Positions 9,871-61,712 of a stretch of DNA of 64,000 bases are shown piece by piece. The stretch is from Trichoplax adhaerens (Eukaryota; Animalia; Placozoa): assembly GCF_000150275.1 (NCBI RefSeq), contig NW_002060965.1:310001-374000 (forward strand), given 5' to 3'. The notes beneath the pieces are model-generated. The model worked only from the letters and a program-made list of their open reading frames with translations, searched no databases and was not told the DNA's origin. The stretch's first letter is position 1, and the number at the start of each line of letters is the position of its first letter. Made by a program: the position numbers and the translations under genes.

Positions 9871-12800
9871 ATGGCTAATCATCGAAAGAAAAGAGAATGG
9901 CCAGAAGATTTCCAGGATAGTCAAATCAGGATTGAAGGAAAAATTAAAAAGTTTATAACCACTTTTATTCAAGAGTTTAACAACAACTTGAATGATTTAT
10001 CTCAAGTACTGGATAGAGAAACTAAGTACAAGCCAGAAATAATTAGAAACAACGCTGCACAAATTTTCATTGACTTCCTAACCTTTATACGTTCGTTGCC
10101 TATTAAAACTCCGCTGGTTGATTTAGGAAAACTAACTTCAAATATAGAAAATTTGATTTTAATAATAAAGAAAAGGTATGATCGCAAGACAATTAAGAAA
10201 ATTATTAATGGTATATCTCCCAACAATGACCGCTCCGCATTAGGCATATCTATGATAGCTTGCGATCTCGTCAGGATCTACGAGCAACAACTATCCTTTA
10301 TTTCTAACTCAAGCGATTTTTACTACATTAAGAAATTTGCTAAGGATATGATCGCTGCTATCATCGTGTATATTTTGGATCAACCAGATAATCTACCGCA
10401 AGAAGCAGACAAAATGGCAAAATTTATTAGCCCATGCATTATGAATCCAAAAATTGTCAAGAAAAATTGGTTAGTTCAGATCGACTTTAAGATTTTCTTT
10501 ACAAATCTCATGTTTCTATATTATAATCGCTATCGTAGATAATCAGGCAAGTTACTCTTTACAATATTCTGCTAGTGTTTCAATAGTGTCAGGTCTTATA
10601 TCGGAATCCAGCTTTTAACTTAATGAACATATCTGACGATAGCAGACTCGAAACTAGAAAAGGCTATGTAAAGAAACGTAAATCTACTCAACTAGACCAA
10701 TCAAATCGTAATCTCGTAATGAGCTACATGGCCTATTGATATTTTATTTAGTAGAACTTTATCTTTCTAGGTTAAATGGATCAAGTTACAACTTCTTAAC
10801 AGCTGCTATCCTTCGTTATATTGATAAGACAACTGTAATCTATTCCCTAAATTCTTTTACAGCAAGCTCCCTTTAGCCAACTTACTTACATAGCTACAAT
10901 ATTTATTGCTGCGTCGTAAATATTTATCCTGATGCGGCAGGTACAGTATCTTAATTCCAAAGTAAATACAAATTTATAGGAGCCTCTTGTTAATCACCCC
11001 CAGACATTAACATTCTCGCACAACATGTCACTCTCTAAATTCTACCATTATCAATTACCACAATCAGCTACTTCCCTAATAAACGACGATTGCAACAGTT
11101 AAAAACAATAATTGGAAGAATAGCTCTACTTATTATCAAATTGCACGATAGTAGACTCAAAGCATAAAGACTAGTTAATGAATTAAGTCATACAAGTATG
11201 AACTGAGCTAAAATAATTAGGTAGATTATACAAGTTGAACAAAAAGTTGTCTGTTGGATAAAAGGTAGAGTGAGATCAGTTACATCACTACAGAAACAGC
11301 CGTTAGAAAGGCAGTTCTACCTATTACTAAGTTGAGGGGCAGCATTACTGGATCAACAAGGGTAACGAATACCTAATTTATATTATCTTCTCATACCACA
11401 ACCTTGGCGGTAATTCAATATCTTGTAGCTCAAGCATTAAACCACTAAACTATGAGATAGATAATTGCCCTTAACTTGATCTCAAAGAAATTTTTTAACT
11501 AAAATTATAAATGATTAATTACAAGTTTAATCTACTTAGATCCAATGTCTTGAATGATAGCTTTATAAATAAGATTACTTACAGAAGAGCGCAATTTCTA
11601 TAAGCGCTGATTGATATTAGGAATCCAAGATTAGCATTAAATAGAATTTGTTCACCAATTATATGATATACGTCTATATTGAAGAATGCGTACCGGAAGA
11701 CATGAATTATGAACTAACTTTATCCTACAATAACTAATTTTCAGTTTGTGTAATAAATTCTTTCACTCTCGTTGAAATGTACCAATTTGTGAACGTTACG
11801 CTAACTAGTCTTTCAAATTATAATCCTATTTGCAGCTATAGTATAAAAAAAGGAAGTCAATTAAAAATTGACTGGCAAGGAAACGAAAACCTTGAAAAGT
11901 TTATTCATTCGACTTAGTCGAAAGTTCTGGAATTACAATAGAAGAGGATAATTCGTACAAGTATTACGACTTACCTCGTCAAGGGAAAAATGCTCAGTAT
12001 GGCTTCCGACAATTATCCATCTTCAGACAGCAAGATATCGAAAAACAAGATGCTATTCGGTGCCTCAACGATATTACAAAGCAAATAAAGAGCAGTTCTC
12101 AACCACTGTACCAGTATCAAAGCAAATTAAGCAGGAATCTAGACATGCAATTCTTTATCCAATATGCTGAACAAGTTTTAGATGTAGTCAAACAGGATGA
12201 ATATAAAATCTCTGTTACGATCGATGACGATCAAATTAATGCAATCACAGCATTGATAACAGAGAATGTTTTCAATTTGATCAGTGATCTACTGAATAAG
12301 TTGAAGATTTCTTTGAAAGAAGTGTTTACGAACGAGATGGTAGAGAAAATTACCAAATGTCTAGATCTGATTACTAATGAAGAATTCGTGTTAACTTACT
12401 CAAACAAGCAGATTTTAGAGCATATGAATCAAAATCAAGAAACAATAATAAAAATGCTAAATGAAATTTTTGAAAATCAAAATAGAATGCAACAAGAGCT
12501 AGATAATTTAAATCAAAAGCGAGGAAATGGCATAGCTACACTTATACCTAGTCAACCCAAGGAGAATATATCACAAGATGGCGACTGTCTGGATGGCGTA
12601 GTCATGGACAGAACTCTTGAAGAAGGTGAAGGTGGGCAATCTTTACTTTTATGTATTATTCACTAAATAATCTCGATTGAGAATTAGTCCAGCACTTTAT
12701 ACAATATTCAGCTGAGGAGAATTACAGTCCAAAGTTTGTTGCACAACAGCAGCAATGATTATAATACATCTTAGATCGTTTTAGTGAGTCAGCAAATTAA

Positions 12801-14403
12801 AGGAATTTAAATGACAGCGATAGCATATTTGCATATACGATGGCTACTCTGCAACAGAACTAGAACGCATACCTTCATTCTACGTGAAAATAGTTTACCC
12901 TAATATTAAGAATTAAATTAAAAAACGAAATATTAATGTGCGAAGGTTTACATTAAAACGAAGTAATTTAGTAGACCGTAACTGATGATGTAACCAAGTA
13001 GAAGTGGGTATTACATGATGATAACGAACAATTCTATTCGAGAATTCATTAAAATAGTTTTCTCCTATCAGAAGAGTTATTACAATAATTTTAGAACTAT
13101 ACAGTATGCCTACTTGCTCGTTTGCATTAATACATCGCATTATAGTACATCGACAATTTATAAAAATTTTCATTTATCATCGCGAAGTGTACAACTTTTA
13201 AATGTCTTGACAAGCAGCTTTCATTCTAATACTTATGTTACAGGTGTTTCAAATCTTCATTAACCCGCACTTTTAGGCAAAAGATTACATCTTTTATAAG
13301 CGGCTTACAGAATTATACCTTTAAATAAGACGAATGTCGAAATACTTAGTGGCTCAATTGTTAATTTAAAATAAAATCATTGCAGCAGTTGCATCTCACC
13401 TTCATATATGTTTCTCATACGTAATTTTTTACGATAGAATAGCTATATTTTCATCTCGCTACCAATGTTATAAGTTTCGTAGCAATGACATATTACAAAC
13501 AGTAAGCAGATGTCTTCTATTCATGGATCTCCAAGTTAAAAATCATATCTCCTTATCTGTCATTGTAATGAGGCAGACTTTATCTTATTCTATATGAATT
13601 TATTAAATTACAATAAAGTTAGACCTGCAAAAACTTAAGATAAAAATCTACTTTTAGTACAATATTTAAAATGTTCATGCAAGCTAGCCTATAATAGCAG
13701 AACAGTAAAACAAGCGATACTACCTCTAAATTTCTACGATTTCTATCGCTAAATCAAATCAACGAACAAACAGTTTACTGACCAAGCTGTCTATAAATCA
13801 TAGTAGTTATGAATCTCTTCTACTTTTCTGGACTTAGATTACTCTCTAGCTGTCTCTTCTACCAAGAGACGTTAAGTTGGTTGATTGCAAGTTTACGTTA
13901 ACCTTGTAAAATAATACTAGGCAATAGTTAGTCCGGTTCTTTATGAAATCTAACGGTTTAAATCACTTTTTGAACGTAGTAACTTTCAGTCGTTTCTTTT
14001 CTACTTTATTAAAAAATTTACTTTATTTCTATCTTTACACAATATAAAGGATGGCTATTACTGAAATTCGAACGTTATTTGATTTATTCCTCTTGTAACC
14101 GATTGTCTTTCTTTTTTTGTCTAAGGTGCCCAACGAATCTTAGATTTAATTTCCAAAACTCAAATCTTGAATGACATCAAAGCTGTCAATTTAAAAGTGT
14201 TTTACGAATGTCTCGGCCTAAAGCATTTTAAAGTCAAAACAATCTTGAGCAGTAATCTAACAATAGGAGATAGACTAAAAAATATAATTAAAATTTGGTG
14301 CAACGAAAAACAAACCGAAGCAACAAAAAGAGTTCTCGTTGAAGCTTTGTCTAAAGTTGGATTAGATAAAGCAGCTGAATTGGTATCCAAGTCTCAGAAG
14401 TAA
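9871..14403 (+). CDS. Gene A: unknown N-terminal domain X + coiled coil + C-terminal Death domain (adaptor-like); 1-bp frameshift in exon 2 (pseudogene or assembly error)
   Basis: Exons 9871-10469, ~11836-12625, 14126-14403 (phases 2 and 1 compatible). Exons 1-2 are paralogous to gene B (WPEDF, ACDLVRIYEQQ, KKFA.DM, KKGS.L, YGFRQL). Last exon has a Death-domain pattern (LGL...V..I...L..II..W.....EAT...LVEAL..VGL..AAELV). Frameshift near 11900 versus the paralog. Confidence 0.7.
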
Positions 14404-15445
14404 ATATCAATGCAGCATATGCCTGCAGCTACAGCAAATCTGAATACCATTTGAATATTATCTCGCCTGAAAGCATAGACGTAGATCTTGATGGAATATC
14501 TATAATAAATGGTTGAAACAGTACTGCATACTAATTGCCAGAGCATATTAAATTCCTAGCGTGATAACGGCCTCAGGACGTCTTAATGAGCGATTCTATC
14601 TTCATGTCAACGGCATATAATACACAGTTTATAGGAATATTCATATGCATAATGTATGATGTAAGCTCATATTTAGAAATTGAAACAGTATTTGTCGTAC
14701 CATTTTATGGAAGAATATTTTGCAATCACTGATTATGCAAGTCGACAGAGTTTAAAGTTAGTCAGCTACGATACTTGTACTCGTATTAGTCAGTATTCCA
14801 TTTGAATATCCAACAAGACCAAGTATACAGTATTATGATCTGCGCGATTTTATGTAACTAATTACATAATTGTTCTACTATTTACCTTCTATTGATCTGC
14901 AATGCTGCGATTATCTTACTCATTACTTTAAATATCATAGTAGCAATCAACCATGTAATTTAGTCGATCTTATAATAGTGGTCTTACGTAGACAGACTAC
15001 GACAGGGGCTATTCAATATAATTATAAAAATAGCTATCTTTGGCAATTCCCGAAATTTAGTCCAATACTATGCTAGCCACGTTATATTCGGTGTAGTTCA
15101 TATAACAACCAAGCTATCAATTATTTCACAGCTTACAGCACAGTAAGGAAAAGAAAAATGCAATAAATTCCTTACCAATCAACCTGTCTTATAGTATAGG
15201 ATAACGATGTCATTAACATTAAATAAATTCATTTTATTTTTTATTATTCAACGATTTCATTCTTAGAAATACTTTTCGACTATTCCAATAGCAGGCATTA
15301 CTTAAAATAGTACAGATAGATAAAAGAATAGATAAATCTTCACTTTTAAGTATCACACATAAAAAAATTCTATTCAAGTACATAATAGAATAACTTTACT
15401 TAAAAGTTTGTCCTACATTTTATAGAGATTCAATAAATAAGCTAA

Positions 15446-15945: not shown

Positions 15946-16455
15946 GTAAGTAAGGTTATTAATAATCTATCTCAATATAAAAATCATTTAAATTAGTATC
16001 GTAATTTACTATTATTTACAGCATGTGCTATATCCTCTAACTTAGTATTATTATGAATACGCACGAATATCATCCTCCGGTACAACATAAGATAGCATAA
16101 CTGTATTGGTGATTGTTATCATACGAGAACTATATCTAGTTAGGTGATCTGACAAATCTGTAACTAATCAGTATCCGAAAGACTACATACTTATAATATT
16201 GCACATCGTGCAATCAGTCATGCAAGAATTGAGTGATTGAGAGGTTTTATTCATTCTAGTTTCTAGAGATACTCTTAAAGTTCTGAATAGTAAAGTTCTT
16301 GAGATATCTGTAGTGGAGTACATTAGTGATATATAACTTCTTAAATTGCTGAGAGTAATTCTAAATCTATTTCAATAGAAATTATTAAACGTAACTTATA
16401 AAGATTCCACAAGTATTGCTTCATCCCCGAGTCTTACAAGAGTACCTTCGTCAGG

Positions 16456-18356: not shown

Positions 18357-21300
18357 ATGGCAAATCAACAAGAGGCTGGCAAATGGCCAGAAGATTTTGA
18401 TGACAGTCAATTCAAGAATGGATCAAAGATTAAACAATTTTTAATCACCTTCATTAAAAATTTTATCTCAGTGTTGCAAGAGATGTCTAATATGCTTGAA
18501 CTTCAAATTGAATTAAAGTCAGGGATAATTGCAGATTCTACATCACAATTTCTGGATGGTATTAAATCCTTTCTATTAGCAGTCTCGCATGATGGACTGT
18601 ATAATATAGCAAAGGGAAACGAAATAATACAAAGACTAATCGACGAAATTACCGAAAGGCGCGATCGTAAATTCATCAAAAAAATTATTGACCGTCTAAC
18701 TCCCAACAAAGATAGCATTAAATTAGCTATATCCATAATGGCTTGCGATCTTGTCAGAATCTATGAGCAGCAAATATCTATTATTTCTGGTTATAGCGAT
18801 AATTACTACGTTAAAAAATTTGCAAATGATATGGTCAAGGTGATCATCAGGTACATTTTAAATGAGGAAGATCGCCCACCGGAAAAGCCGACTGATATTG
18901 CGAAATTTGTTATCCCATGTCTTTTTAATCCTAATTTTGCCAAAAAAAAGTGGTTAGTTGAGATTTTATAGAATAATTTTATTTGTAAATCTCATATTGT
19001 TCTATAGCAACTTTAATTGATAAGTAGAGAAGATGGTTTTTAGTTGCCCATAGTGATTTCAGCTAATAATAAAAGTAATGCGTAGTAAAATTTCTACATA
19101 AATTTAAAGTCAGCACTCTGTAAGCTAGATTAGACATATCTATTTAATACAGTAATTGTAGATGATGGCTAGTATGATGAGACGGTGTGTACTAGTACTA
19201 ATAGTACTATGTTATCTACAGAATTGACTGTATATTAATAACTCAAAACTGAGTTGATGGATTGTGAACCAAAGGGTTATAAAATTTGTTCATTAAAATA
19301 AAGATACCTTTTTTAGCGAAATCACTGTTTAAACCCAATAGTAAAATAGTTCAATACTTTATCATTATTCTACTAGTATGAGCCAGCTCATCGCATTCCA
19401 TTTTATCTTAATGTTTTTTACCAAAATTATAAGCAATTATAACTTACACCTACTTGGATTAAATTTTTAGAATAATAACTAATATGAGATGCAGATAAAG
19501 GCAATATAAATGGATTGATGATGATATTTTATAACTTCACTATCATTCCACTAACTGATGAGCTAGCTAACTGTACTTCACTTAGCCTAGAGACTTTTTC
19601 AACTAAAATCATGCGTAATCTTAACTCTAATTTTACTTAGATCCTATGCATATAATGAGTTCCTTAATTAATAAAATTCACAATTTACATAGGTTAATGA
19701 TAGACATTAGTTATGTAAAACTACTTTCGAAAGGAATTTCTTACGTATTTCTTAGTGTATACCTACGCGCCGTAAATGGATTCTAAAAGCTCTTTGGTTG
19801 ACAAATACTCGTTTAAATTGCAGTTATTAAAATTAGCAATTGTCTAAAGTGAAGAAATTAGGTCACCACTTGTTCAACCCGAAAAGTATGATTTAATTAT
19901 AGCACGCCTGATGAAGAAAATTCCATTTTCTTACCATTAAGATAATAATTAAATGTGGCTAAGTAAGATCAGTCGGGTGAATTAATAAGTCTAGCTTCTA
20001 CGATAGCTATTCCATGTGATTCCAAAATCACATGAGTAAATTATACAGTAGTATAAATCTATATAACTGTCAGCTACATCTTTAAATGCATATGATACGA
20101 AGAAAGCAAGTACACCATTTATCGTATCAGCCATCATACTATTACTTATTAAACATAGCAGACTATTCTGCTTGCTAGTACTACTGTACTCATGCTGTAG
20201 CTGCCAATTATTGAATGACTAATATTTATACTGCAGGAAATATGCTAAGTGTCCACTACGATAATTAATTAACACATTGATGCTATTCATTCTTTTAGCC
20301 ATGTTTCATGGCAAAATCGTTTTAAAATGCTACAGCAAGTACTTTCATACCATAATCCTATTTTTAGGTTCAAAATAAAGAAGGGAAGTGAATTAGAAAT
20401 AGTCTTACAAGAAAATGGAAAGCTGAAAAAAATCAATTCACCAGATTTAATTATCAATACTGGAATTAGAGTAAAGGTGAATAATTCTTTTAAGTGCTAT
20501 GATCTAAGCCACGGTGGAAAAATTGCTCTATATGGCTTCCGACAGTTGTCCTTTTTCAGCATTGGCAACCATAAAGACATAGTGAACGGCATCAACGATA
20601 TTACGCATCAAATTAATATCAATGATCAATCATTATATCAGTATAAAAGCAAATTAAGCGGAAATCTAGATATGGAATCCTTTATTCATTATGCTGAACA
20701 GGTTCTAAATGTCGCCACACAGAAAGATCGATTTGAAATCACTGCTACGGTCAATGATGATCAAATCAATATAATTACCACATTATTAACAGAGGATATT
20801 TCAAATTTAATCAATGATAAAATGGATACGTTCAAAATCTACCTGAAAGAAGCGTTTGGGAAAGAAATGAAAGAGATGAAAGAGATACTAGAGAAGATTG
20901 CAAAGTATCAGGATTTGATTACAAATGAAAAATTCATTTTAACTAACTCAATTGAAGAGATTTCAAAGGCTTTTAACATTCATACTAAAAAGATGATAGA
21001 AAATCTAGAAAAAGCAGGAACTGAACGAAAGCAAATTTTAGCGCTTAATCTTAGAATAGAGCAAAAGTTAGATGGTTTAGTAAATCAAATACAGAGCAAT
21101 CCCACAGATGCATCAGGTCTTAATCAACCCAACCGGAATATATCACAAGAGAGCGACAGTAAGGATACCACAGTCATTAGCAAACCTCTTTTAAAAGGTG
21201 ATAAATATCTTCACTTTTATATAACAGCAATAATTGAAATAGATCATAGATCACACCAGTAAGTCAGCAAAATTAAATGAATTTAGCTGATAATCATATC

Positions 21301-24300
21301 ATATTTACGATGGTCACATTGCAACAGAACTGTAACACACGTCTTTATTCATGGGATAACAAATTACTCTAATTAGGATCTAAATTATCGAAAAATATAT
21401 GATATGGAATACTTTTTGCGATATACAGCATGAAGCACAGCCCACACATTTTCAATAATATCTAAGCTGTAGCAACCATAATTACAACAGGATTCATTAA
21501 AATAGTACTCGCATGTCACAAAAGAGAGTTACCAGCAAATTAAAACAATACGGTTTACCTATTTACTCGGTTGCATCACGTATTGTAGTACGTCGACAAT
21601 TTATAAAAATTTCAATTATCTTCATCAATAAAATCCAGATAAATCCATTAGCCGGATATCAAAACTTACTATATAGAGATACCTTCAAAGTATTACTCAT
21701 TAAATCGTACTTAAAACCTTAATCATGACCTACTTTTAACTTTAGATTTGCTAAAGAATTTTCCGATCGTACCGGACAGTCACTATATTCGTCGAGAAAA
21801 ATGGATAACTAAAATTTGTGATCAATTAAAGGAAATTGGCACGAATGGCGGTCAAGTTTTAATCTATGGTTCCCCAGGAATTGGTAAAACTGTAGCAGTT
21901 GCTCAAGCAGTAGAGCGAAGTGTAATTGAGCTAGGCCACTTTCAATCCTATAAAGCATATTGGCTAGATATAGGTACTGTTAGCCATTTTAAAAATAAGA
22001 CTTTTCTAAATTTATAGATAGTATTCTATAAAGTTTACAATGTATTATACAACATAATATTTAATGTATGAAATAAGACATAAATGTTGCATGCAATTTC
22101 CTTCAACTAGAACTTAAGCGCTCTGATAGGATACTTCGTTTTATTTGCTCCGAAAATAGAGACATAAATAACATTTTTAATATCTAGCTAACTAGAAACA
22201 CAAGTTTAAAGCTGCAGGTCCGGAAATATACCGTACTATCTAAAATTATAACGTATTATGCTATAGCTGCTGACAGTCACAGCTGCTTGCTATCACTGTA
22301 TTTCCTAAATCAAATTACAACAAGCTTTTACGTAATATACCATAAGTATAAAGACGCTAATAAGGAAAACATATATCTAAAGTGTTACAGTCGATATTAA
22401 GCCATTGGGTGAAAGCATAAAGAAACTTAAAACAAAGATTTTCTAGTTTTAGAACAAAGTACTGGCTCATAAATTCGTAAAGTGAATACGTTTTTGCTCG
22501 AGCAGGATTGGATTATTTCTGCGTAAGATCAGAAGTACCATTAATAGCATTCGTTCTAATAAACATATACCTCATTTAACATTTATTGGAGAAATTTGCT
22601 TATAGGATTAACGATAAATCCCTTCTTATCAGTTCTCTCATTATTAGAAAAAAATCTAAATTGACAACAAGATTATATTAGAAACTTGAAAGCATTGGTT
22701 AACAAATTTTTGCCACTATTAGCTGTAATGATTGAAGTTCATTACAGTATTTATGTATTAAATTAGCATATAGAACTTTGCCTATGCAAAGGCACAAATA
22801 TATATGTACTATCTCTGAGTTAGATCTGATCTGTTTAATAATAAATGTACGAGTATATAATTATAATAATTTTAATATTTAGGTAAAATAAATGAAGATC
22901 AGCTAGCAGAAAAGTTAAAAAGCTTGTATCAAATTCTTAGTGGTTCAAAAGTCTTTTCCAATGAATTGCCCAGCATTCTGGATAATATTAATAGACTCTT
23001 TGAAGGTAACAAACGAATTTCAGCTTAATACCAATTCTTAAATTTGACAAACAGCTATTGTAGCATTAATTTTCCCTTAAAAATATCAGAGAATAGAATA
23101 AAGTCATTACATAATCAATTATGTGGTAATTTAATCGTATTCTTATCGAATTATTCTAGAGGATAAGAAAGTAGGAAATAATCTATTTGTTTTTGATGAT
23201 ATTTGGCATCCTTCATATTATAATTATTTTAAATTTGCTAAAAAATCAATCGCTACATCAAGAGAAATTAATCCGAATAATAAATTGCAGCCCTCAATCG
23301 AAATATCGGTAAGCACATTTAAATATTACTTAATATTGTAGTTTAAATATTTTTTTATTCGTATTTCATTTTAAAGCAATAATTAATTTCATAATTAGAA
23401 TTAAAATTGAAAATATACGTATCAGAAATTTTACCCATCTCTCAATTAGCTAAGCTATATAGCACATTGAACGTGAATTTAGAATAAGGTATATTAACTA
23501 TATTTATAGGAAGGTTTTACCGATATTGAAGTTCGTGAGGTTTTTAAGAAATATGAAAAAATAGAGAATGCCGAAATTTGCAAAGAGGACCCGTGGATTG
23601 ATGATATAATTATAGCTTCCGGAGGCTTACCTTTAGCTATTGGCTTAATTGGCGGCCTTGGTTTAAGAACCAATGAGCAGTGGAAAAATGCTCTTAATTC
23701 CATCAGAGATGCGAAATGCCCCATAAAAATTCCAAATTATGAAAATAATCTATGGGGAACAGTGGAGTTAAGCATAAAAAATTTAGGTGAACATGAGCAA
23801 AAATTTCGGCAACTTGGTGCCTTTAAATACCCAAAAGTATCCATTGATTCTATTACATCATTATGGCAGTGTGAAAAAGAAGTAGGACAAAGTATTTTGA
23901 GGAAATTTCATAGTAAATCATTGCTAAAATCTTTAGATTACGAAAGGTAAGAGCTATACATTGCATGCCAACGTTCATAATTTAATTCCTAGAACGCTTC
24001 CATTTCCTGAATGTAATATTCTGCCAGTTCTTGATAGTAGCATAGTTGTGCCTATGACAGCAATACTGATTAGGAGGCATTAAAATCGCCTTCTATCACT
24101 TCATTTTAATCATTTGTAGTAGTAGCTCTGACAATGAAGTTGAAAGAGCTTTTATTGATCCTATATTAGTCTTTAATGTAATAAAGAATTGACCAAAAGA
24201 GTAGTTTGGCGTAGTACAAGACAGGCTCCATAATAAATTATTTACATCCCTTCTACAGGCACGTAGTTACTAATTCTTTCCTTAAAACAAAAAATCGTTG

Positions 24301-27300
24301 GTCTGTTCCTAGCCTTAGATAAGGCCTTAACATCAAGGATTAAAGTAGTTTTCTTAGACATAAATTAATGCATATTACAATCTAGAGTAGAGCAGATCAA
24401 TTTTTATATGTAGCTTTAGCGCGGTTACCTGCTAAATAGACTTGGCATTTGACAGGTAGTGTAGGTTTAAAATTCAAGAACTAATGTAGATCATTTTACA
24501 CATTTTCGATGGATGATGTCTACGCAATAATATCTGCTTTATTACCTAATTATAATCTAGACGTAAAAAGGCGTAGTAAGCTTGTAATTCATCTTTTCGA
24601 ATTCTAAGCATTAATAGTCTCAAACGAATCATTTTTTATTAATCTTCTCAATATTTTATACCATTTATAATCCATTTAATTAATAATTTATCATTTTTAA
24701 ATCCAGTATGGTGAAATTTAGCAATCGATAACAGATAAAATTACTTGATTATAAGTCATCCAATTAAGTATCGTAGCCATCAATAAGAACCAACTATATA
24801 TTCATAGTATATTTCTATAAATCGTGAAATATTCCAAAATCGATCTTTAAATATATATCTAAAAGTAACAAATATTAATGTCCAATGTATCTTCTTTTCT
24901 AATATATATTATCTCTTGGAATGGGGCTATGATTGGCATAAAGTGATAACTGCGATTTGCATAACATGATGCTAAGCCATCTTCAAGTGCTTAATAGCGA
25001 AGAACAAACTCAAGAAGCGTATGAACAATCTTTAAATAAAAAGTTATTCGAAGGCTATTTGTGGCGATGCAATGGAAAGTGGAGTCAGTATCCTGAAACC
25101 GATGTATATTTTTACCATAATATTATCGATCATGCTATAAAGGCAAATAATCATGAACTTTTAAAAAGTTTAATGAGCGATTTCTACTGGATGTCAGTCA
25201 AATTGAAAGTATTCCAGACAATTTATAAACTATGCATTGATATCGAGAAATATATCAAGTACTTAGCTTCCAGAAAAGAGGTAAATTCAACTAAACTATA
25301 ATCATTTCTTCCAAAAAGCGCTAAGAAAAGTGAGATAGTTTTAAACTAGAAACTAATAAAATAGCTTTCATTTCTAGCTGCTGACACAAGCTAAAAATCA
25401 TGTATGAATTATAAAACTGAGTTCTACACAAACCCTAACGTAAATGTATCACATTCTCTAATTACAGCACGGTAACATAAAATATAATATATAGATTTGA
25501 AGATATCAGATAACATATTTACCGAAAGAACGTGCTAAGCTATAATTCAACATAACAAAATATTACTTTAAATAGGCATCAATTAATTTTCCTTGTCCAT
25601 GAGTTACATATATGAAAGTATATTTAGGCGAATATAAAATGCGCTCATCGGTGTAATAACAAGTGTGAAAGCTATATGAATAAATTAAATGCTCATGATA
25701 GTACATAAATGTTTAATTTACTATCATACGTTTAACTTCCTTGGCTGCTTCAGGATAGAATTGGATAGTTTAATACTAGAAAGTATTGCAAAAGTATACA
25801 ATTCTAACTACTAACCCAAAATTGCAATGGAATTTTTAGGACAACGAAAATTACAAAATCTTACTTTCATTACTCCGTCAACATGAATACTATTTAGATT
25901 TAGAATCCAAGGACTTGGTTCAGTTTTTACTCATAATCGCATTTAACAACGACAGTACGTGGATTACTAACATGGCAACTACTCTAGCCAGTCAATGTTC
26001 TGAAAGCGGCAAATATTGGATGATAGCAGGGTAAGCAAAAGCTAATAATGGCTGATTTAAATAGCATCGTAATCATCAATAATATGATAGATGATTGAAA
26101 TACTAGCTAAAATTAGCCATGATCAGATTGATACACTGTATAGAAAAGCTTTGTGGAGGCAACTTAAAGGAAATTAGCCCCTGTTCTGGCAGTTTACTAA
26201 CTCAAATTCTTCGTCATACCAGCCACAATCCGGTATTAGTTCATTAGATAAATCGATTGCTCCTCATCACACAGGTCTTTCTAGAAGGACTTTGTAGAAT
26301 AGTCCATACTTACAAAGCGCATGACGACTTCACTTAATTAAAATCACTATAAATGCATAACATATAGACTACATTAATTCGTACAAGCGAAGCACCAACT
26401 GTGAAAACCAATATAGCATGTTATGTATTCAGAGAATTGAAGCAATTACGTCAAGCAAAACTAAGCAATTAATTATTTCAGTACGTAGCACTACCAAAAG
26501 ACAACAGACAGAAATCATGATAAATCAATGCAGCGTAAATATTTTATCTACCACACAAAACAAAATACAACGTTGTCATATAATTAGGATGTTAAATAAT
26601 TAGATTACAATCACAAATCATAGTAATGCCAAAATAAGCAGACAAAGAATAGAATCAAAAGCTTCATACTTTAACATTATACGCGCAATGGATTATATTA
26701 CCAATATAGCAAAATCGTAATTCAGCAAGTGCTAATGCAGTAATATTCTATAATTCTACAGTATACCATAGTTGCAGTATACAAAATCCTAGCATTATAG
26801 CGACATTTGTGCATCAAAATAGCACGTTATCCACTACAGTAGGCTACATAGCATATACCATCTCAGCCTAGGATAGTAATAAATGATTATAAATAACGAC
26901 ATGAGGATAGAAAGTCCTACTAAAACTGAACTTAATAGCGTACGTTTCTATATTAAAGCAGAAGACTATAGAAAGTGTCTGTTTTTGACAAATACAAGAA
27001 AAACTATCACTGATACAATATCACTATATTGCATATCAGTCGTTACTGTTGTGTTACTGTAAAAGAAATCGAATAAAAATTTAAAAATGAGATCATCATG
27101 ACCTACAGTAATAGAGTAACTATAGTACTGTAGATAGTATATGCAAAAGAATAGATCAAAATATGAAAATTTTACCATAGTATGTAACAAACAGAACTAA
27201 TTAGAGAGGTTATTATGGAATTGCTTTCATACAGCATAAAAGTATAGCAAGAATGAGCTAGCTATAAGCAAGAAAAAGTAATCAAAATACTTTCACTTCC

Positions 27301-30300
27301 ATGTTGAATATTTCAAATTAAACAAATCAGAATATCAATGTGGTACTGTTGATTCCTGAATTGTAATTAATAATGATACGGTAATAACCAAAACTTGCAT
27401 TTATAATGTCGATAGAGTGCACGCTAGTTTTTTCTCTTTTAATACTCGCAGCACTATTTACAAGTTGTGTTGGAGGCGATCATATCTACTACCTCTTTAA
27501 TAGACAATACCATGCTTAAGCAGGAAATGATAGCATAACTCTATATCCTTGTAATGTCTAGTACAATTAGCTATGATTATTACAATTCTAGATATAATCA
27601 AAGCAGAAAATTTTTAACAGAGCTATAAATCATAACGTCTTGTAGTAACCTGTTGTCACAAATTCAGCTTTATGATCGTCTAAACTTCGCTACCAGCCAC
27701 TTCAGGACTCCTACTAACTAAGAAGAGATACCGTGAGTTTGACTAACTACAGACTCACAAGTACTATGAGTGGCTGGAAGGTTGTTTAGCTTTATGAGTT
27801 TTATTCCAAAAGTACCTGAAAAGTATAGACCTTATTGTACAACAAAGAAATAGCAACTACGCGACGTAGTATCTGCTCGGCCTTATATACGATCCCCACA
27901 CGTAGGTGGTCCAAAATAGAGAAACAAGTTTTATATCATTTACTTGCATTGATATGAGAAATAAGACATAAATCATAATATGATTCAGTATATAGTCCAG
28001 TTATAAACAACATTAATTATTCGTAACATCTCAAGCTGGAGTAAATAAACAATACTAGTACAAACTCACGTCGCTTTGCTGACGGTTTACCGTAATGTAT
28101 CCATTTGTTAATAATTAACAGATAGTATTACCATTCGACATTATATATATCCCGGTAATAGCCAGGCACTACTATATTCACAGCTATGCTTGTAGAATAC
28201 TACTTTTCAATTATGCATTGACGGATGAAATGCTATATTAAGATTAGTTAATGGTCCAAAGCACATGATAACTAATGTACGGTGATGGCCATACCAAGTT
28301 AAGATTAGCAGGTACTGTAAGATATCTACAGTGTGGTACAATGTCCTTAGCACTGTGGTCAATTCTATACCAATCATTATAATGTGTTTAAAGAACGCTT
28401 GGGTATGCAAGAAAAGCTTGCTCTGTCGATAAGTGCTGTTATAAGAAAATGCAACAATCAAAACGGCAGTGTAGGAAACTCTATAAAGATTCTATGTTTA
28501 TTCAATTTTCATTAGAGTATTACTTCAAATCAAAATTGAAAGGCCCAGTGGCCACCCTTAGCGATATAAGGAATACCATTTTTAAAAATCAGTACTCTGC
28601 AGAAATTACTACCTTAGAGCTATTCGTTTTACATGAAGAAATCTGGAGCTAAAAGGTCCTGTAAGAATCTTATACTGATCTATTGAAATGAACCCATAAT
28701 CAGAGTCATCTAACAGTAGTATAAATACCCCCGCGCTGCTCGTTTCAAGGGAGGGTGGGATTGGTGCTAAGTTAAAACTAGCAGTGAACATCATCATCGT
28801 AAACGCAATTAATTCAGATTTCCATTAACATCTAATGTAATAAACAATTTTAGGAGGATGGAAAACTAATCCACAAAAATATAAACAGTTTTGGGAGAAC
28901 AACAAACTAATCTACAAAAGTAAGATGACAGCATCGCAACACCTGTTTATCTAACAAAAATTCTTGACATTAACTTCATTACTAAACCTTGATGCCTCGA
29001 TTACTGAGTTACTAATAACGAGTTATTTGTGAAAATGTCCACGTAAGAAATTAAGCTTAACAGTAGTAAGAGTGAAGATGGTGGTACGAAACCTGAGGGG
29101 ATTAGTGGTGTCAAAGATTTTACTTATTGGCGTTGGATAGGCAAATGCTATTAGTCGGTAATTTAGAGACGATAAATGAAACCCAAAGTGGGAATATAAG
29201 AAAAATTAAGTAATGAACGATTTAATGCGCCGCAATAGTGAGACGATTTACTAAGTAACTACCTCAGTATAGGGATAAAAATAGTACTTATAACGATTCT
29301 GGATGAAACTAAAGGCAAATGTGTTAACATCAACTAGACATACAAGGGAAGAAACAGTTACGTCTAACTGGATGGAATCCAAGACAATAGGCACGAGTCA
29401 ATCCGATACTATACCTCGCTATTGCGTCAGAGAAGATGGCTTGAGTATTATTAATGCACGAAAGATTACAGATGCAAAATTTGCCATCAAGGTAAGTCTT
29501 TTAAGCTCTTAAGAGGTAATAATTCATAAATATTCCTTACGTTATTTTCATAGGTATAATATTTCCAGCTATAGGTGTTGAATAATCTTCTTTCTATAAA
29601 ATATCATCAATCATTCAGATACAAGACTATGATACTGGAGAAATTAAATTTGACCTGCCAGTCTCCAAAAGAAATATTAAAGAAGTTAAAATTTCAGCAG
29701 ATGGAAATTGGCTTGCTTTCTTAATGCACATATCTCAGGTAATAAATGAGATGCAATTGAATAACTAGAACAACAGCAATTATACTGCAAATTAAATTCA
29801 GGACATTTTATGTTTTTGGTGTTATGGCACTCCAACTTGAATCTGAACATATAAGCAAATCGCCAAAATAAGCTATATAAGAATTACGGAGACTATTAAA
29901 GCCACTAGTTTTCAATATACGACAATGTCAGAGCAATAAAGCACTCATATGCTGCAGTTAGCGCTATCTTGTGGCAAAGAACTCCAGCGTAGATACAATA
30001 ACCGAAACTACTTTCCAGTATTTTTCAGTCTCTGTGCTAGTGACATATGAGAACTCGATTTCTCAGCTGTACTCTGTAGACAACTGATTAATTGCTATGT
30101 ATTTTCTTCTCGTTACAACCCCTGAACGCTTCTTAAGCAATTAATACTTTTATTTTATGACCACACTGGCTTAAATAGACTTCTACAGTGAATTCTAATG
30201 TCAATTAGCGTGAATACTTATTTTGCAATATTTTTCAAGTTATGCTGATAGATATCTAAAATTACTAAATAGATAGGTCGATATTTAGGAACTTAGGGTG

Positions 30301-36300: not shown

Positions 36301-36578
36301 GCTGTAGCAATGGGAAACACTATAATTTCGAATTTGTTCTGGATCTTAAAAAGATTAGCAACTTATGGTCTAGTCAGCGTTTAGCATTTATCAAAGATAA
36401 GAGTCAAATTCATATTTACGATAAATGCAAAATACAGTTATTGCAAGTTATACAATCACCTATTAATGATGAATATAGCGAAATATTAGGCAACGAGAAT
36501 CAATCATCGTTCATTTGTCGAACTAATGATCGTGAATACATTGTTTATAAAGCAATAGAGACGGTAAATCAAAGCTGA
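18357..36578 (+). CDS. Gene B: APAF1-like STAND ATPase with domain X + coiled coil + NB-ARC + divergent WD40-like beta-propeller, no CARD; about 21 exons, apparently intact
   Basis: Exons 18357-18952, 20368-21197, 21746-21973 (Walker A GSPGIGKT), 22883-23005, 23160-23308 (Walker B LFVFDDIW; sensor-1 IATSR), 23510-23946 (GGLPLAI; KSLL), ~24944-25280 (LHN at the MHD position; YFYHNIIDHA), 25840-26030, 29338-29491, 29619-29738 (VKISADGNWLAF), 32968-33150, 33329-33638, ~33807-34066 (IAISADQQFIAV), further short exons, and last exon 36258-36578. A stop-free, phase-consistent path can be traced. Confidence 0.85.
27654..28941. mobile_element. Solo LTR (family 2) interrupted by a Helitron
   Basis: TGTCAC...GCAACA with 5-bp TSD CCTGT (27649-27653, 28942-28946). 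Without the Helitron it is ~582 bp, matching the 583-bp homolog at 31062-31644 (tctgctcgg.cttatatac, ccaca.gtaggtggt). Confidence 0.8.
28055..28760 (-). mobile_element. Non-autonomous Helitron, second copy, nested in the solo LTR
   Basis: Collinear with 8777-9732 but lacks the internal duplication. 3' hairpin CGTC(A)GC-AAA-GCGACG then TGAGTTTGTACTAG; flanked by A (28054) and T (28761). Confidence 0.8.
29960..30556. mobile_element. Degenerate LTR, family 1
   Basis: Homologous over most of its length to 1406-1993; ends near GCAACA (30556); no TSD found and the left boundary is uncertain. Confidence 0.65.
31062..31644. mobile_element. Solo LTR, family 2
   Basis: AGTCAC (TGTCAC with one change)...GTAACA; 5-bp TSD TCTAC at 31057-31061 and 31645-31649; homologous to 27654-28941. 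Confidence 0.75.
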
Positions 36579-55427: not shown

Positions 55428-58400
55428 ATGGGGTTGTCTTCTCAAGTTTTACAAGTTATCGATAAATACTATCAGAAATTAATTCATGAGATTCCATTAG
55501 CAGACCTCATTGATGACTTTGCAAGTAGGAATATTCTGTCAGAATATGAAGTCGAAGCATTTCATTTAGATTTACCGCCTATTGCAAAGCAATTTCAGCT
55601 GATAGCGATATTAAAACGCAAAGAGAGCTCTGATTTTTACCAGTTTTGTCAAGCCTTACAAAGCCATGCAACAGCATCCATTCGACAGTTAGGAGTAATG
55701 TTACAAAATGACAGTAATATAGTAGATTTGATAAGACAAGGTAATTTTGCAATAATTAAGGTGTAACTTTAACAGATGTATTAGTTAATTAGACTAAATA
55801 CTTAAATCAACCAACGCCTATAATGTAGTAAACTGTTTTAAATAAAGTCAAAATAGAGAATAGCATTCATAATCGATGTAACGCTAGAATGTTACCGGAA
55901 ATTGAAGCAATTTCCTAAATTATGTTCAGTTTTCTTTTTGTAACGTCCAATTTTTTTTTATCAAATGAATAGAGCAACTTAAAGATTCAACGTCCGGTAA
56001 GTAGTTAGAGACAGATCTTGCCTGTCAAGAATAAAGCTGTTGAAATGCAAGAATAATTATTTATTTCGACTGCAAATGCACCCAAGTACATAATGATTGA
56101 TTATTCAAAGTAGTAGCTTAGAATCTCAATAGAGACTGAATTTAATACCTGTTAAAGTACCAACTCTAATGACGCCACGTGCCAATATGTCTTGATCAGC
56201 ATTTCAATTATACTGCAGTTATGAAGTAATAACTTGTAGCGATTCAGAGATGCATAAGTAAAGCTGATATCATACTAAAAGCAGTTGCAGATAGAATGTG
56301 GAGTATCAATTCCGATCCAAACGAGCAAAAACCTTACTTTAAATGTGAACGGTAGTAATAAATTATTTTGTGGTATTGCCTAACTTAATTTCGTACTTAT
56401 GCCTTTACATCCTATAATTACAAGTAAAACTTTAGCAAGATTGTGTAGAATTTAATATAATAAAAATTTGCTATATCGTACTTAGTCCTGGTTCACCCTT
56501 TATAGCCTTACTCTTAAGATGCACAATTTTGCTCTAGAACGTCCACTTGATAGAACAGATCGTGGTCAAGCACCGTGTGTATGCAGTTTAGCACTATTCA
56601 CAATTACATAAACTTTTGTACAGTATTAGAAAATCTTTACAAGTCTTCTACCGCTACCCAATACGTATATTAAATGCTGTAGTAAATGAATAGAAGGCAA
56701 TTAATCCATAAGATTCTGTTTATCATTAGATTTTGACAGGATTTATAGTAACCCTATGGATTTACCATGTGAAAATATTACCGACAAAAATTTCCCCAAG
56801 TGGAAGATAACAGCGTAAGTTTGCTGAATGATGTCTAAATAAATTTCTATCATGCACCTATTGACTAAGCTTATTCCTAAACATGGCATAAAAACAGTTA
56901 TACTGATCGAAGAATTGCTGAAGATACCCGTCTATCATCTATGGCAATTGGAACAAGTAGGTGTGATGTTTCACCTAAATGCTATAAATCATCAGATGAA
57001 ATTTTAAAAATTATATCTAGCAACAACAACGCTACAAATGACGGTGAACTTGTGGTAAGATTAGTATTTTGATCCAATTCAACGTTACTTTAAAAGTGCT
57101 AAATTAAAGGTTTATGCGTACGATAAATTATCAGAAAATTCTGCCACTCAACCGCATGCTTTATACGGATTCCTTTTTACAGGTAACCGACTATCAAAGT
57201 ACTCAAACGACTTATAGACTGGAATTACCAAATATACTACTAAATCAAATATTAATATCATCGGACGGCAAATTTATAGCTTACTCCGTTGAAAGCGAAG
57301 ACAGTCAAGATCATTCCTCTAACCCAATTGATTCAGATAGTGATGAAGAAATCTATAATGTACGTTGAAATCTCATTTCCTTGATCATTCATTCAACTGT
57401 GGTACATACTTAGGAAATGAGCTAGATATATTTCAATGAAGAAGTATACAAAAATTTTTGATACATTCGTAAAATGACAAGAGCTGCATCTGCCCTAACA
57501 TTAGAAAGTAAAGAACTATTAGTTAATTTATCATTTTTCTTCATAGTTATTCTCAATAGTCCTTTACGACTCTGCAATACTCATACTAATATTAAAAACA
57601 CTTCAAAAACTAAATTTTACAACAAGTAATCTTTCAAATTATTTTGAAATATGCTCATTAATTGCTCATATGTCTTTCTTCCTATACGCAATAGATTAAA
57701 ATATAATCTTAACGCTAATAAAGTAGCAACAATAGGTCTTATCTAAAATATCCCTGTAATTAGATCGAAATGAAATCCGAAGAATGGAGAATTTATTGCA
57801 CCTGTACGAACCAGCAACTCCAGTTTATTCATCAAGATGGAAAGAAATCAATTTCCTTATTATGTCGTTTACTAGAAATTTACCCAGTAACATCCAGCTA
57901 TCCAATCTTGATGACGATATCATTGAATCAGCAAAATCTTAACGTAAGGAATACATAACTGTATGATAGACTGATATAGCCATATTCTTGCATTGGTCTG
58001 TATAAATCAACAAAAATTATGATAGATATCAAATATAATAAATATCAAGCTTTCTGCTAGACCTTAGTTTCTCAGCTTACTATAAAACAACTACGAATAT
58101 ATAATAATACTAAATCAAATTGAATCAAAATAATACCGTTTTAGGTAATTTCAAATATAACTGATCAAAATTAATAATAAAATATAGTAGATATCTGTCA
58201 ATATTGGTCCACAAAGTATCCACCTTAGCTTTATCCTATAATTAAGCAAATTTGAAAGTTGGATAATTTAAAATCAGATTAAATCAACATATGAGTATAC
58301 CAGCACGTGGATAATTTTAGAAATTAGTGATCATAATTCCGAATAACGTAAAGTTAATTCAAAGCATAATGCACTATTTTAGTCTTCTTCTTATCTAAGC

Positions 58401-61400
58401 AATTAAAAGCTTAGCAGCCTTACATTATTGCATTAATTTTAATCATTGTAGATTTGGGAAATACAAGATAAGAATATCAAGCAAACTCGACAGACCATTA
58501 TGGCTGCCCATTGCAAGATATTTGGATGTAGATTTATAGCTAATAGCAATAAAATTATCGTATGGTGGCCTATTGATAACCGAAATTTAATGCCGGCCGC
58601 GGAAGATTCTTCACTAAGCATTGAATCTTGCCAAATAGAAGTAATCTTAATCCTACGTAGAAACTTTTGCAGTAATCTACCCTTGATAAATTACGATATT
58701 AATTAAGTCATGCGATAATGATTTTACCAGATTTGGAATCTTAAAGACTGGCACCATCATCAATCATTTCAAGTCCTTTCCTCCATAAACTATTTAGATG
58801 ACAAAAATGGATTCGCCAAACCTAAAACGATAGATGACGGCAATTTATTAATGAAAGTCGAATATGTAGACCAGAATATTCCAATAATCGTACTAAAATA
58901 TGATAATTTACTAACCTATTTAGTGGTAGAAGATAATCAAACAAGCTTCATCGATTTTACTTCACAATTTACGACGTCGTTGCAGCTTTTACATAAATGT
59001 CATGATGCCCTTATCGAAAATCTAACCTTGTCCCATGATCATCGATTAATTGCATTCTCAACGAATTATGCCATTAATGTACGTTTGTAACACGTAATTC
59101 TAAGGTTTATGACATCTATTAAAGTGTGAAGGTTGCTTTTTTCTCATATTCACTTCCACAGCCTGATTGATACGTTACTTTTTAATTTATTCGCAAAGAA
59201 CAGATATTTAAGGTGGCTTGTGGAGGCATTCATTCCCATTTGACAATTGACACCATTGAAAATATATCAGAATTAATGTTTGTTCCAGATAGTAACCACT
59301 TGCTCACTTATAGCAATATTTTTAGCAATGTTTTATCTCGTTATGATATTACTGGTAAGGAAAAAATTATCATCACGTGGAATTACAATTTTTATATTCG
59401 GTAAATGTATATGAATTGAATCTCCATTTAGGAAAGCAGCATGGCTGGAAGAAAGGACTTAATCAACATAGTGGCAATTATGATCAGATAATCGTAGCTT
59501 CAAGTTGCACCTTTATAAATGGCATTCCTATTATTGCCTTATTAATAAGAAGTCATCCAAAGATTGATTATAAAGTATATGTAAGTTTCTTATAGGCTGA
59601 AATAAATCGAAGTCAAGTATATATTAAATCCGTTCTTTTATCTTATCAAATTTGCGATAAAATAATTATAGTTTGTGATCACTCAAAATACTTGAGGTAT
59701 TCTTTTTTACTATTATTGGCAGATTTATCAAGGCGAAACCCTGAAAGCTACTTCCAATTTTGCATTAGACCAAGAATATGACGACTGCTTCCTCTATAAT
59801 AATAATGACTCCATTAATCTTTACTACAGCCAGCATTGCGTAAATCAGCAAAGCTTAGAAGATAGTAAAAGTAAAGTTGAGCACCGGCACGTCAAAATCA
59901 AAGAGGCTAGTCAATAATCCTACTAGCTAACTTGAAAAATAAAAATGAATATTGATAATGTCACGATACCTATTTAGTTCCCTTATCGTACATCATAAGC
60001 CTACCATAGATTTTAGAAGTAAATTCAATTAATGCACCAATCCTCTGTTCAGTACGAGCGAAATCGATTCGATAGGAATAAATTAGAATTAACCAAGATC
60101 AAGAACTAAGTAACTTGAATATCCAACGATATAAAACTATATGATTCATTAAGTAAGAGATTAATTTGGTTCAAAAATCTCTGAGTTTTTATCGATCGTT
60201 TATAAACTAAATTAGTACATACTCAAACATAAGCTCAAGGATTATATCGACAATTTTTCAAACCTATAATTTGATGTTATCGCTCTATCTCAGATTAAGT
60301 GACAACTTAATGCATCACTAATAAATCACTAACATTTTTATTCTAATAGTTAACCGGATTGCAAACAAATCTACGTCAGAGAGGACAGTCTGAATTCAAA
60401 ATAAATACAGACTCCAATCAGTTATTAATACTCCAGTCAAGTTTTAGAGAATCTGATCAAACTTACCTATTTCTAATTTCAGCTCTGGTAAGTTAATATG
60501 AAACTATCATCAAGATAGCGCATTATTTGCCTTTTATTTAGTAAGATACTACTAAAAGACAATAAGATTTACTCTATTTCATTCTACTTTAGTTTGATGA
60601 TGACAGTGAACAGATCATTGTAGTTAAAATCAATTTTTCCCGTGAAGAAAAACATACAATCTATTTGGATGATACCGCAGCGCATCGATTTACTCAACTA
60701 ATTTACGCAGATTGTTACAATCTATTTATTCAACAAACGATCAGCGAAGGAGGCGATGAAAGTGTCATTAAAGTAAGCAAATATTAATAAGACGAATAAG
60801 ATTCTCCGAAATTTGAAGGTCTATCATGGGCCATAATCTTTAATTGCTGTACTTTTACTTCAGCATCAAATGAATCAATCTCATATGAGATATTATATCA
60901 AATTAGATTATTTGTATATTACTTTAACTATGTATATTCGCTTTAGTGGTACAAATTAGGTGATGGAATAACCTCAACACAATTGGTTAAATCTCACTAT
61001 TACAGCTCAATAGATGATGGAATAGCCTTTAAAATTACCATTCCTATTTCCAAGAGTGCAGATAGCATTAAAGTTAATTTATCACCACTGTATGTAGAGG
61101 ATCAAGATGAAATGATTAAAGAATGGGGGGAAAAAGAGGCTGATTTGTTTGTTAGTACGATAGAATTAATTGTATAATATTATGTTATTGAAATTGATTT
61201 ATGTGCCAGCTCATTTTTCAATACGATAGCACCATTACGTCTAAAGTATTCTCATAAATTCATCTCTAAGCTCAAGAATTGTCGGCGCTATGATCGTGAA
61301 CGCTTCTTGTTAAGCACAGAAAATGAATTTACGGTAACAACTCTACATTCACAGATAAATATTCTGATGTAAAAACAAATCAATTTTTTAGAGGACTGAT

Positions 61401-61712
61401 TAGTCCAATGTGTTGTTATAGATGTTTAACGGCCACCTCGTCCTGGTTATGAAAGGCTACGGCGAACAGACTCGAGAATTCACAGAATACTTTGAACTTA
61501 ATAGCTTGGAAAATTTAATCACATCGAAATACTTCATTATTGTGGATTGGATGAGTTACAAAATCTTAATCTATGATAATAAAACCCTTGCATTAATGCA
61601 GACTATTGAGGCACCAGCGATCAAACCTAAAACCATCATAGGCAATCAAGAGCAATCTCTTTTTATTTGTCAAACAGATAGCAAGCAATATTATATTATT
61701 AAGGCCTTATAA
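55428..61712 (+). CDS. Gene C: CARD + short linker + WD40-like propeller homologous to gene B, lacking NB-ARC
   Basis: Exon 55428-55740 is CARD-like (YYQKLIHEIPLADLIDDFASRNILSEYEVE...QLIAILKRK....FYQFCQAL). Downstream exons match gene B one by one (WKITA~WMIAG; SMAIGTSRCD~SKTIGTSQSD; ILISSDGKFIAY~VKISADGNWLAF; last exon IIGNQEQSLFICQTD~ILGNENQSSFICRTN). Only ~1 kb, with no Walker A/B, lies between CARD and propeller. One junction near 59905 is uncertain (possible GC donor). Confidence 0.75.

Follow-up and report, generated by a model that had tools for sequence, protein, structure and literature searches.

The window analysed here, a 64,000-nucleotide stretch of the placozoan Trichoplax adhaerens (contig NW_002060965.1, positions 310,001–374,000; C1392:310001-374000 in the 105.6-Mb H1 assembly of 1414 contigs in which the genome searches were made), carries three genes built from apoptosome-type modules, called A, B and C below, and raises the question whether these are parts of one cell-death machine or separate products of turnover within one gene family. 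All three lie on the plus strand within 52 kb, where the preliminary description had placed them, and were read there as a 'split apoptosome', with A joining a domain X to a Death domain, B joining the same X to an NB-ARC ATPase and a propeller, and C joining a CARD to a related propeller without the ATPase. To our knowledge, placozoans lack classical NOD-like and Toll-like receptors, and their Apaf-1-type genes have undergone a large expansion that is still unexplained. The answer favoured here, held as reasonably probable, is that the locus represents a birth-and-death, exon-shuffling corner of this Apaf-1-like (NB-ARC STAND ATPase) expansion rather than one split machine. New in it are a candidate receptor/adaptor pair of adjacent genes with a common module, the source of the Death exon of A, traced at the level of DNA, a second, independent Death partner of the same module, and an RNA-supported CARD-tail gene without ATPase, together with its origin.

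The module common to A and B occupies the first two exons of both genes. The first exons (A 9871-10539, B 18357-18968) were 45% identical over 204 amino acids (aa) at E 2e-59 and the second exons 45% identical over 260 aa at E 2e-61, as had been claimed; the first exons have the donor TG/GTTAGT in common, and the second exons both follow a conserved acceptor. Gene A was placed in the window by the protein P0003 at 97-100% identity, and its ortholog in Trichoplax sp. H2 (TrispH2_003548, P0027, 556 aa) is built from the same three exons, the last of which (14125-14400) matched Pfam Death with 27.7 bits against a cut-off of 22.6 (E 2.9e-6). The description of A as X plus Death was thereby upheld, and its layout is that of a putative bipartite adaptor, with a head in common with the adjacent STAND ATPase; as judged from sequence, an adaptor role of A is plausible. 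The features of A are as follows.

9871..14403 (+): gene A (TRIADDRAFT_61448), head X, helical stalk and Death domain; exons 9871-10469, 11836-about 12631 and 14126-14403
9871..10469 (+): A exon 1, encoding domain X (helical head); 45% identity with the first exon of B, no Pfam match
11836..12631 (+): A exon 2, short beta-hairpin region and long helices (stalk), 45% identical to B exon 2
13198..15062 (+): 3' segment of A in common with the adaptor gene D1, containing the Death exon 14126-14403 with a part of the preceding intron 2 and about 660 nucleotides (nt) of 3' flank

The source of the 3' segment was found on the same contig. Positions 13198-15062 are collinear over 1.9 kb with C1392:388763-386969 (minus strand) at 72-77% DNA identity, and this region is the 3' end of the Death-domain adaptor gene D1, which begins about 13 kb past the end of the window; the Death exons of A and D1 are 65% identical at the protein level. 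Both adaptor genes present at the D1 locus matched Pfam Death (21.1 and 54.4 bits), while their CARD-like N-termini produced no Pfam match and a single weak match (E 0.022). Going by these alignments, gene A is an exon-shuffled chimera of two X-stalk exons with a DNA copy of the D1 3' end, including intron, Death exon and flank.

The same head was found joined to a Death domain at one more locus. The second X-stalk-Death gene, TRIADDRAFT_59578 (P0001/P0023), has an H2 ortholog, RDD36911.1, with a Pfam Death match at 6e-11, and its Death domain (P0023) is only 29% identical to that of A. In the X-stalk tree, A, B and P0001 formed a clade with support of 99/98, unresolved within and nested among the X-NB-ARC genes. 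The X-stalk appears, therefore, with Death domains of two lineages, which would require two separate fusions, or a single one followed by exon replacement. Since the X-stalk is joined to two unrelated Death domains, the architecture is likely to be selected and in use rather than accidental, and this is the main argument of the present analysis. The recurrence of the architectures in the genome, which had been put forward as a check, was found for X-NB-ARC-APAF1_C-tail genes (P0008, P0014, P0026 and other loci) and once for X-stalk-Death, but not for the layout of A beside B. Around the second X-stalk-Death gene (C1404:1723770-1724381), about ten CARD-like exons stand in a same-strand array (C1404:1696788-1812293, minus strand) that looks like a large death-fold gene cluster.

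The relation between B and C depends on the origin of C, the features of which were resolved as follows.

55428..61712 (+): gene C, CARD and tail, no NB-ARC; 16 exons, 943-aa open frame
55428-55740, 55973-55996, 56730-56814, 56898-57054, 57183-57359, 57764-57943, 58452-58640, 58731-59078 (+): C exons 1-8, from RNA joints
59204-59354, 59432-59580, 59723-59903, 60348-60487, 60593-60772, 60947-61150, 61271-61333, 61422-61712 (+): C exons 9-16, from RNA joints
55428..55740 (+): C exon 1, CARD; Pfam CARD 4.1e-5, 24.0 bits, just passing the cut-off of 23.9
56730..56814 (+), 85 nt: C exon 3, remnant of the very end of HD2, with weak matches to L033:6488-6559 (E 0.011) and L032:4454-4525 (E 0.12)
56898..61712 (+): C tail, exons 4-16, matching the tails of the loci L031, L032 and L033 exon by exon, E down to 1e-18

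For the C stretch, several putative RNA runs from different studies recovered 0.2-0.4 of the words sampled, which is about the exon fraction of the gene. RNA contigs of four runs were placed on 55350-61349, and the runs X5, X6 and X15 (three studies) produced 14 splice joints, 13 of them GT-AG and one GC-AG, plus a loose end matching the start of the last exon, which brings the total to 15 joints (14 GT-AG, one GC-AG); a single 1091-nt contig of X6 connects the CARD exon with exons of the tail. The contigs of run X7 on C were unspliced and look like DNA or pre-mRNA. Read across these joints, the frame begins with the ATG at 55428, stays open over 943 codons and closes with the stop at 61710-61712. 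The proposed content of C, a CARD without ATPase, was thus confirmed, and the RNA check asked of it showed a spliced, transcribed gene with an intact frame.

The genome contains 56 CARD-like exon matches, and those closest to C (33-38% identity) belong to canonical Apaf-1-like genes, namely the loci on C1400, C1411 and C1414. The last exon of C gave the same picture, with 40-45% identity to the last exons on C1414, C1411 and C1400 versus 34% to that of B. Each of these three loci reads CARD, NB-ARC, APAF1_C and then tail exons equivalent to C exons 4-16 one for one. The other CARD-to-tail genes, with loci paired by coordinates, extend over 8-13.5 kb and include NB-ARC matches, in comparison with 6.3 kb for C. 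The matches of C exon 3 coincide with the point where the HD2 match of P0026 ends or lie immediately behind it, and residues 954-1042 of P0008 match C 56890-57287. As read from its exons, C is a canonical CARD-type Apaf-1 paralog from which the NBD exons and those that follow, up to and including most of HD2, have been lost. Another origin of C, in which a CARD would have been attached to a duplicate of the B tail, was considered and was ruled out by the closer kinship to the canonical CARD-NB-ARC-APAF1_C-tail paralogs.

Because C derives from the canonical lineage, the complementarity of B and C that the split apoptosome needs is gone. In that model, B would give the ATPase ring and C the CARD, the two co-assembling through their related tails or acting as co-sensors, while A would relay to Death partners. 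The complementary domain contents of B and C, the position of the genes on the same strand within 52 kb and the expression of C with an intact frame all agree with it, while the kinship of the CARD and last exon of C to the canonical paralogs and the presence of two opposite-strand seven-transmembrane (7TM) receptor genes between B and C do not. In the solved apoptosomes (Apaf-1, Dark and CED-4), moreover, the propellers bind ligand and take no part in assembly, and a tail shared by B and C would therefore provide no known route of co-assembly. The pairing of B with C was accordingly abandoned, and a split apoptosome is regarded as very unlikely.

Gene B, apart from its head, has the composition of an Apaf-1 relative. 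Its features are listed below, those of the tail being predicted.

18357..36578 (+): gene B, X, stalk, NB-ARC, WHD/HD2 (APAF1_C) and a tail of ~700 aa; predicted length ~1660 aa
18357-18958, 20368-21197 (+): B exons 1-2, X head and stalk, by homology to A exons 1-2
~21754-21987, 22879-23019, 23147-23308, 23510-23946 (+): B NB-ARC exons; Pfam NB-ARC, on P0002 at 2.9e-14
24944-25280, 25840-26030 (+): B HD2 exons, outside the annotated H1 model and the 900-aa H2 model
29338-29491, 29619-29738, 32968-33150, 33839-34108, 34195-34345, 34441-34589 (+): first six predicted tail exons of B, collinear with C, no Pfam match
34763-34946, 35174-35328, 35456-35641, 35781-35984, 36112-36171, 36258-36578 (+): last six predicted tail exons of B, collinear with C, no Pfam match

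The Pfam matches of B were NB-ARC and APAF1_C, the latter with 34.9 bits against a cut-off of 22.8 (E 1.8e-8, on 24942-25298), and exons 1-2 gave none, in agreement with the claim of an ATPase without CARD; the Walker A (GSPGIGKT), Walker B (LFVFDD) and GLPLA motifs are legible in the open frames. The annotated part comprises the first 774 aa (TRIADDRAFT_61449; P0002 at 18357-23944, 97-100% identity), and the remainder is predicted. The HD2 exons would be joined to the NB-ARC exons, going by splice phases, through the chain 23946>24944-25280>25840-26030>29338, which is phase-compatible with strong sites, and, in the step from donor 26030 (phase 2), 29338 is entered in the phase found for the homologous exon of C. 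The twelve predicted tail exons have open frames and family-typical phases, the C-terminus of the paralog P0026 matches B 36309-36500 in the last exon, and full-length paralogs of 1608-1678 aa follow the order X, NB-ARC, APAF1_C, tail. On the strength of the phase-compatible chain, the collinearity of the tail with the family and the full-length paralogs of the same architecture, B is quite probably one gene of ~1660 codons. A profile search for a full-length H2 ortholog of B returned paralogs only.

Comparison of the tails of B and C by tblastx produced four collinear matches, and for 12 of the 14 C exons compared the best-matching open frame of B was in collinear order (z up to 14.7 versus shuffled queries). 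The GT-AG-bounded tail exons of B have the same phase as those of C and equal or near lengths (151/151, 149/149 and 204/204 nt). The earlier claim of a common propeller with matching exons stands, therefore, as far as collinear tails, phases and lengths are concerned, but the exon structure is common to the whole paralog family and not particular to B and C, and the nine C tail exons, ten B frames and ten frames of the canonical locus L031 that were searched had no match to WD40/beta-propeller Pfam models. The sole propeller-type hit among the tail exons of B, C and L031 was to the WDR19 propeller (0.065, B last exon). The label 'WD40' for the B and C tails is suggested by their position in the family and by language-model features, the tail of P0026 having WD40/ANAPC4_WD40 as its nearest Atlas clusters (0.91-0.94); P0008 gave weak propeller Pfam hits (~1e-3).

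Several observations on the DNA of B concern its introns and its counterpart in H2. One intron of B contains a repeat:

28054-28717 (+): dispersed, transposon-like repeat inside a 3.3-kb intron of B, with a second copy at 8776-9682, upstream of A

The element is ~530-740 nt long and returned 470 candidates in a genome-wide first look (40 scored, 85-88% identity); the copy upstream of A includes an internal tandem duplication of 205 nt. A duplicated promoter splitting B into two genes was considered as an explanation of the repeat and was rejected, since the element is dispersed over the genome. In H2, the B intron after the P-loop exon has a 1.7-kb insertion (L011:14086-15775, versus window 22401-22578), which reproduces the 3' end of B itself (window 36098-37788) at 93.6%, and the copied exons are spliced into the 900-aa model. 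A further H2 contig, NOWV01000733.1 (L040, 4141 nt), is an A/B hybrid, in which 1-1174 corresponds to A 12468-13667 (91%) and 1172-4141 to B 21414-24417 (95%); the halves meet at a dispersed repeat of ~105 nt, and no third copy is present in H1. This contig is either a diverged recombinant H2 paralog or an assembly artefact. Finally, the large intron region of B at 30010-33018 differs by 5-6% between H1 and H2 versus 0.5-1.8% in flanking non-coding DNA and may represent a divergent haplotype or a conversion tract; a B counterpart of C exon 6 was not found within it.

The domain X, with its stalk, is nearly restricted to placozoans. A profile built from five X sequences of one sub-clade (threshold E<=1e-3) recovered 22 proteins among 1.84 billion representatives; all the named ones belong to Trichoplax, and the remaining ones are proteins from metagenome and sequencing-run assemblies, two of which, on inspection, sit on low-GC contigs. 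No bacterial giant protein was among these 22 hits, and a scan of bacterial and archaeal genomes likewise revealed no relative. The T. adhaerens genome has nine X matches; an apparent open frame of 4411 aa at one of them, on C1372, proved to be an assembly gap of Ns and not a giant gene. In Pfam, no family matched exons 1-2 of A or B and no CARD was found in B, while an ESM Atlas search with X returned no useful neighbour. Three contigs of metagenome or run-assembly origin (L037, L038 and L039, 30-35% G+C) encode weak X-like domains (E about 1e-11) in proteins of 441-594 aa, in some of which the domain is located mid-protein rather than at the N-terminus.

The AlphaFold (AF2) model of B exon 1 was all-helical over ~180 residues, with a predicted local distance difference test score (pLDDT) of 66 and a predicted template modelling score (pTM) of 0.65. 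In the model of the H2 ortholog of A, the head extends over residues 22-200 (best part at pLDDT 80-93), followed by the beta-hairpin region (208-241), long helices (303-431), a disordered linker and the Death helices. Fold searches of the PDB with the X model and the full H2 ortholog of A remained at background level (Foldseek E of at least 0.19, VIA Z of at most 7.2), and among the Foldseek and VIA matches listed there were no death-fold chains (CARD, DD, DED or PYD), the models being of moderate quality (pLDDT 63-66). The proposal that X is not a death fold agrees, at this moderate model confidence, with the helical model and the lack of a PDB match; because of the moderate quality, X is described here as having no recognisable fold rather than a new fold. 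A sequence search of the PDB with the paralog P0008 produced the NB-ARC of CED-4 as the sole match.

The helical head suggests another role for X, that of an executioner, in which a helical bundle on a stalk would damage membranes or kill once clustered, B acting directly and A being a Death-controlled executioner; parallels are the CC domain of plant resistosomes, fungal HeLo and MLKL. The all-helical head followed by long helices and the N-terminal, effector position of X in a STAND ATPase are consistent with this, but none of the bundles of MLKL, HeLo or CC type was matched in structure (best Foldseek E 0.2-0.4; best VIA Z 7.2, background for helical models), the model confidence is moderate only, and X as read has no hydrophobic or transmembrane character. 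An executioner role is considered unlikely.

Within the favoured reading of the locus as a site of gene turnover, the following mechanism can be drawn for A and B. B is a sensor-type relative of Apaf-1 in which the CARD has been swapped for X (~200 aa) and a helical stalk (~130 aa), with a short beta-hairpin between them, and its tail, by position, would correspond to the ligand-sensing, propeller-type region of the family. Ligand-triggered ring formation of B-type proteins would cluster the X-stalk, the clustered heads or stalks might recruit A by like-with-like contact, and the Death domain of A might then join or nucleate the nearby Death-domain adaptor network leading to CARD-bearing caspases, a relay logic analogous to NLRP3-ASC or PIDD-RAIDD. 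Having no oligomerisation module, C would be unable to build an apoptosome; more likely, it acts on the canonical CARD-type paralogs related to it, titrating their ligand or CARD partner as a decoy or modulator, rather than serving B. Taken in full, with the X-stalk as a new non-death-fold homotypic module, B rings recruiting A towards Death adaptors and CARD caspases, and C as a brake on the canonical branch, this scheme is tentative and its probability is put low.

In Trichoplax sp. H2, 39 clustered NB-ARC genes have been reported, with some models lacking WD40 or CARD, together with two CARD-caspase genes (Kamm 2019, PMC6321704). In the supplementary table, the B ortholog TrispH2_003549 is entered as NB-ARC only, with no repeat or effector domain, and the main text does not describe X, X-Death or CARD-tail architectures (PMC6321704). 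A literature search found no mention of the locus tags TRIADDRAFT_61448 and TRIADDRAFT_61449. Compared to Apaf-1, Dark and CED-4, B has the same NB-ARC with Walker A/B and GLPLA motifs, APAF1_C (HD2) and a long tail in the propeller position, and C has the CARD and tail of the family, the genes being clustered as in H2. In contrast to these, B has an X-stalk in place of the CARD, C is devoid of NB-ARC, WHD and most of HD2, and the tails have no WD40 Pfam match.

Bipartite homotypic adaptors are represented by ASC (PYD-CARD), RAIDD/CRADD (CARD-DD) and FADD (DED-DD). A resembles them in having two modules, one in common with an adjacent receptor-type ATPase and the other a Death domain with 65% identity to the one in a nearby adaptor; in contrast to them, its receptor-side module is not a death fold, the modules are set apart by a long helical stalk, the gene is frameshifted in this assembly, and binding is putative. 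In the CARD-only and PYD-only proteins (COPs and POPs), a recruitment domain without the oligomerisation part is the usual dominant-negative design. C is similar in keeping the recruitment domain of its parent receptor without the oligomerisation part, but it retains a whole sensor tail of ~840 aa and arose by internal exon loss and not by duplication of a CARD alone. In the fungal NWD2/HET-S system, the common element is a short amyloid motif that transmits activation. The present pair is comparable in that a STAND ATPase (B) and an adjacent gene (A) have a common N-terminal element, but this element is a folded module of ~450 aa with no sign of amyloid signalling. Apaf-1-like proteins with a non-CARD head are represented in amphioxus by TIR-NB-ARC-WD40 (PMC2575513). 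The effector head of an Apaf-1-type ATPase was likewise swapped by domain shuffling in B, although the head of B is no known signalling domain and is nearly placozoan-restricted.

Several points weigh against the reading proposed here. The second X-Death locus does not repeat the layout of A beside B, and the tails gave no WD40 match, as described above. B was split by the annotators, with an H1 model of 798 aa (P0002), in which the NB-ARC exons are followed by a last exon of 24 residues (24118-24189), and H2 models of 900, 169 (APAF1_C) and 722 aa; in a protein-database search, no RNA-derived fragments were found that bridge the B exon 23510-23944 to the next exon. No support was obtained for an X-X contact, a single prediction for a complex between the X domains of A and B having given no answer (score 0.00, controls not run), which counts neither way. 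Gene A, moreover, is interrupted in the H1 assembly when the acceptor conserved with B is used:

11893..11914 (+): frameshift site in A, where an A-run (~11896-11900) is one base short relative to the frame of B and leads to TAG at 11912-11914

When the DNA of H1 A, H2 A and H1 B was aligned, H2 A showed an in-frame 3-nt gap at this site and read through, and the Joint Genome Institute (JGI) model of A sidesteps the frameshift by a 47-nt mini-exon (10894-10940) and a different acceptor, a route that looks contrived. In H1, A is either a pseudogene or mis-sequenced; in H2 it is intact. The pseudogenisation foreseen as a refutation for both A and C is contradicted by the intact frame of C and would hold for A in H1 at most. 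Between H1 and H2, A has one synonymous and five non-synonymous changes, with a ratio of non-synonymous to synonymous substitution rates (dN/dS) of about 1.2 on these six changes, and B has a dN/dS of about 0.5 on ~30 differences; H1 and H2 are too close for these ratios to be informative, and constraint on A and B was not demonstrated by the comparison.

The frameshift belongs to a set of observations that would also fit duplication debris, with A and C as non-functional products of unequal crossing-over and deletion, transcribed incidentally. To this set belong also the dN/dS of A, although from six changes, the transposon copies in and beside the genes, and, in H2, the copy of the B 3' end in the B intron and the separate A/B hybrid contig. 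Yet C has kept its 16 exons, 15 functioning splice joints and a stop-free frame of 943 aa despite 30-47% identity to its nearest paralogs, A is intact in H2 with an in-frame gap at the very site of the frameshift, and the joining of the X-stalk to two unrelated Death domains suggests a selected architecture. Debris as the whole explanation is rated as improbable.

In the favoured reading, the locus shows a repertoire in the course of diversification, with a CARD replaced by a new head, this head wired to a Death domain through a traceable DNA duplication, and an ATPase-less derivative still expressed. If X is a homotypic recruitment domain, it would represent a new domain class in animal cell-death and immune signalling and offer a simple system for the origin of receptor-adaptor pairs; if not, the locus would still be a well-documented case in which exons were shuffled and genes turned over within a known family.

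The window, whose G+C content is ~31% along its whole length, also contains genes of other families. Upstream of A are two tandem, intronless paralogs of the HlyIII/PAQR family, at 3704-4669 and 7292-8263 on the minus strand (Pfam 9e-38 and 2.5e-30; 70-76% DNA identity), with the same order kept in Trichoplax sp. H2. Between B and C are two similar multi-exon minus-strand genes, at ~39.1-41.0 kb and 52.7-54.5 kb, apparently tandem paralogs, with one exon matching the secretin-type 7TM receptor family (7tm_2, 7.8e-5). Beyond C, an exon of a HAD-type hydrolase (63675-63923, plus strand) and, past the window, a RING-finger gene and a glycosyltransferase-7 gene (L034/L035) separate C from the Death-domain adaptor pair.

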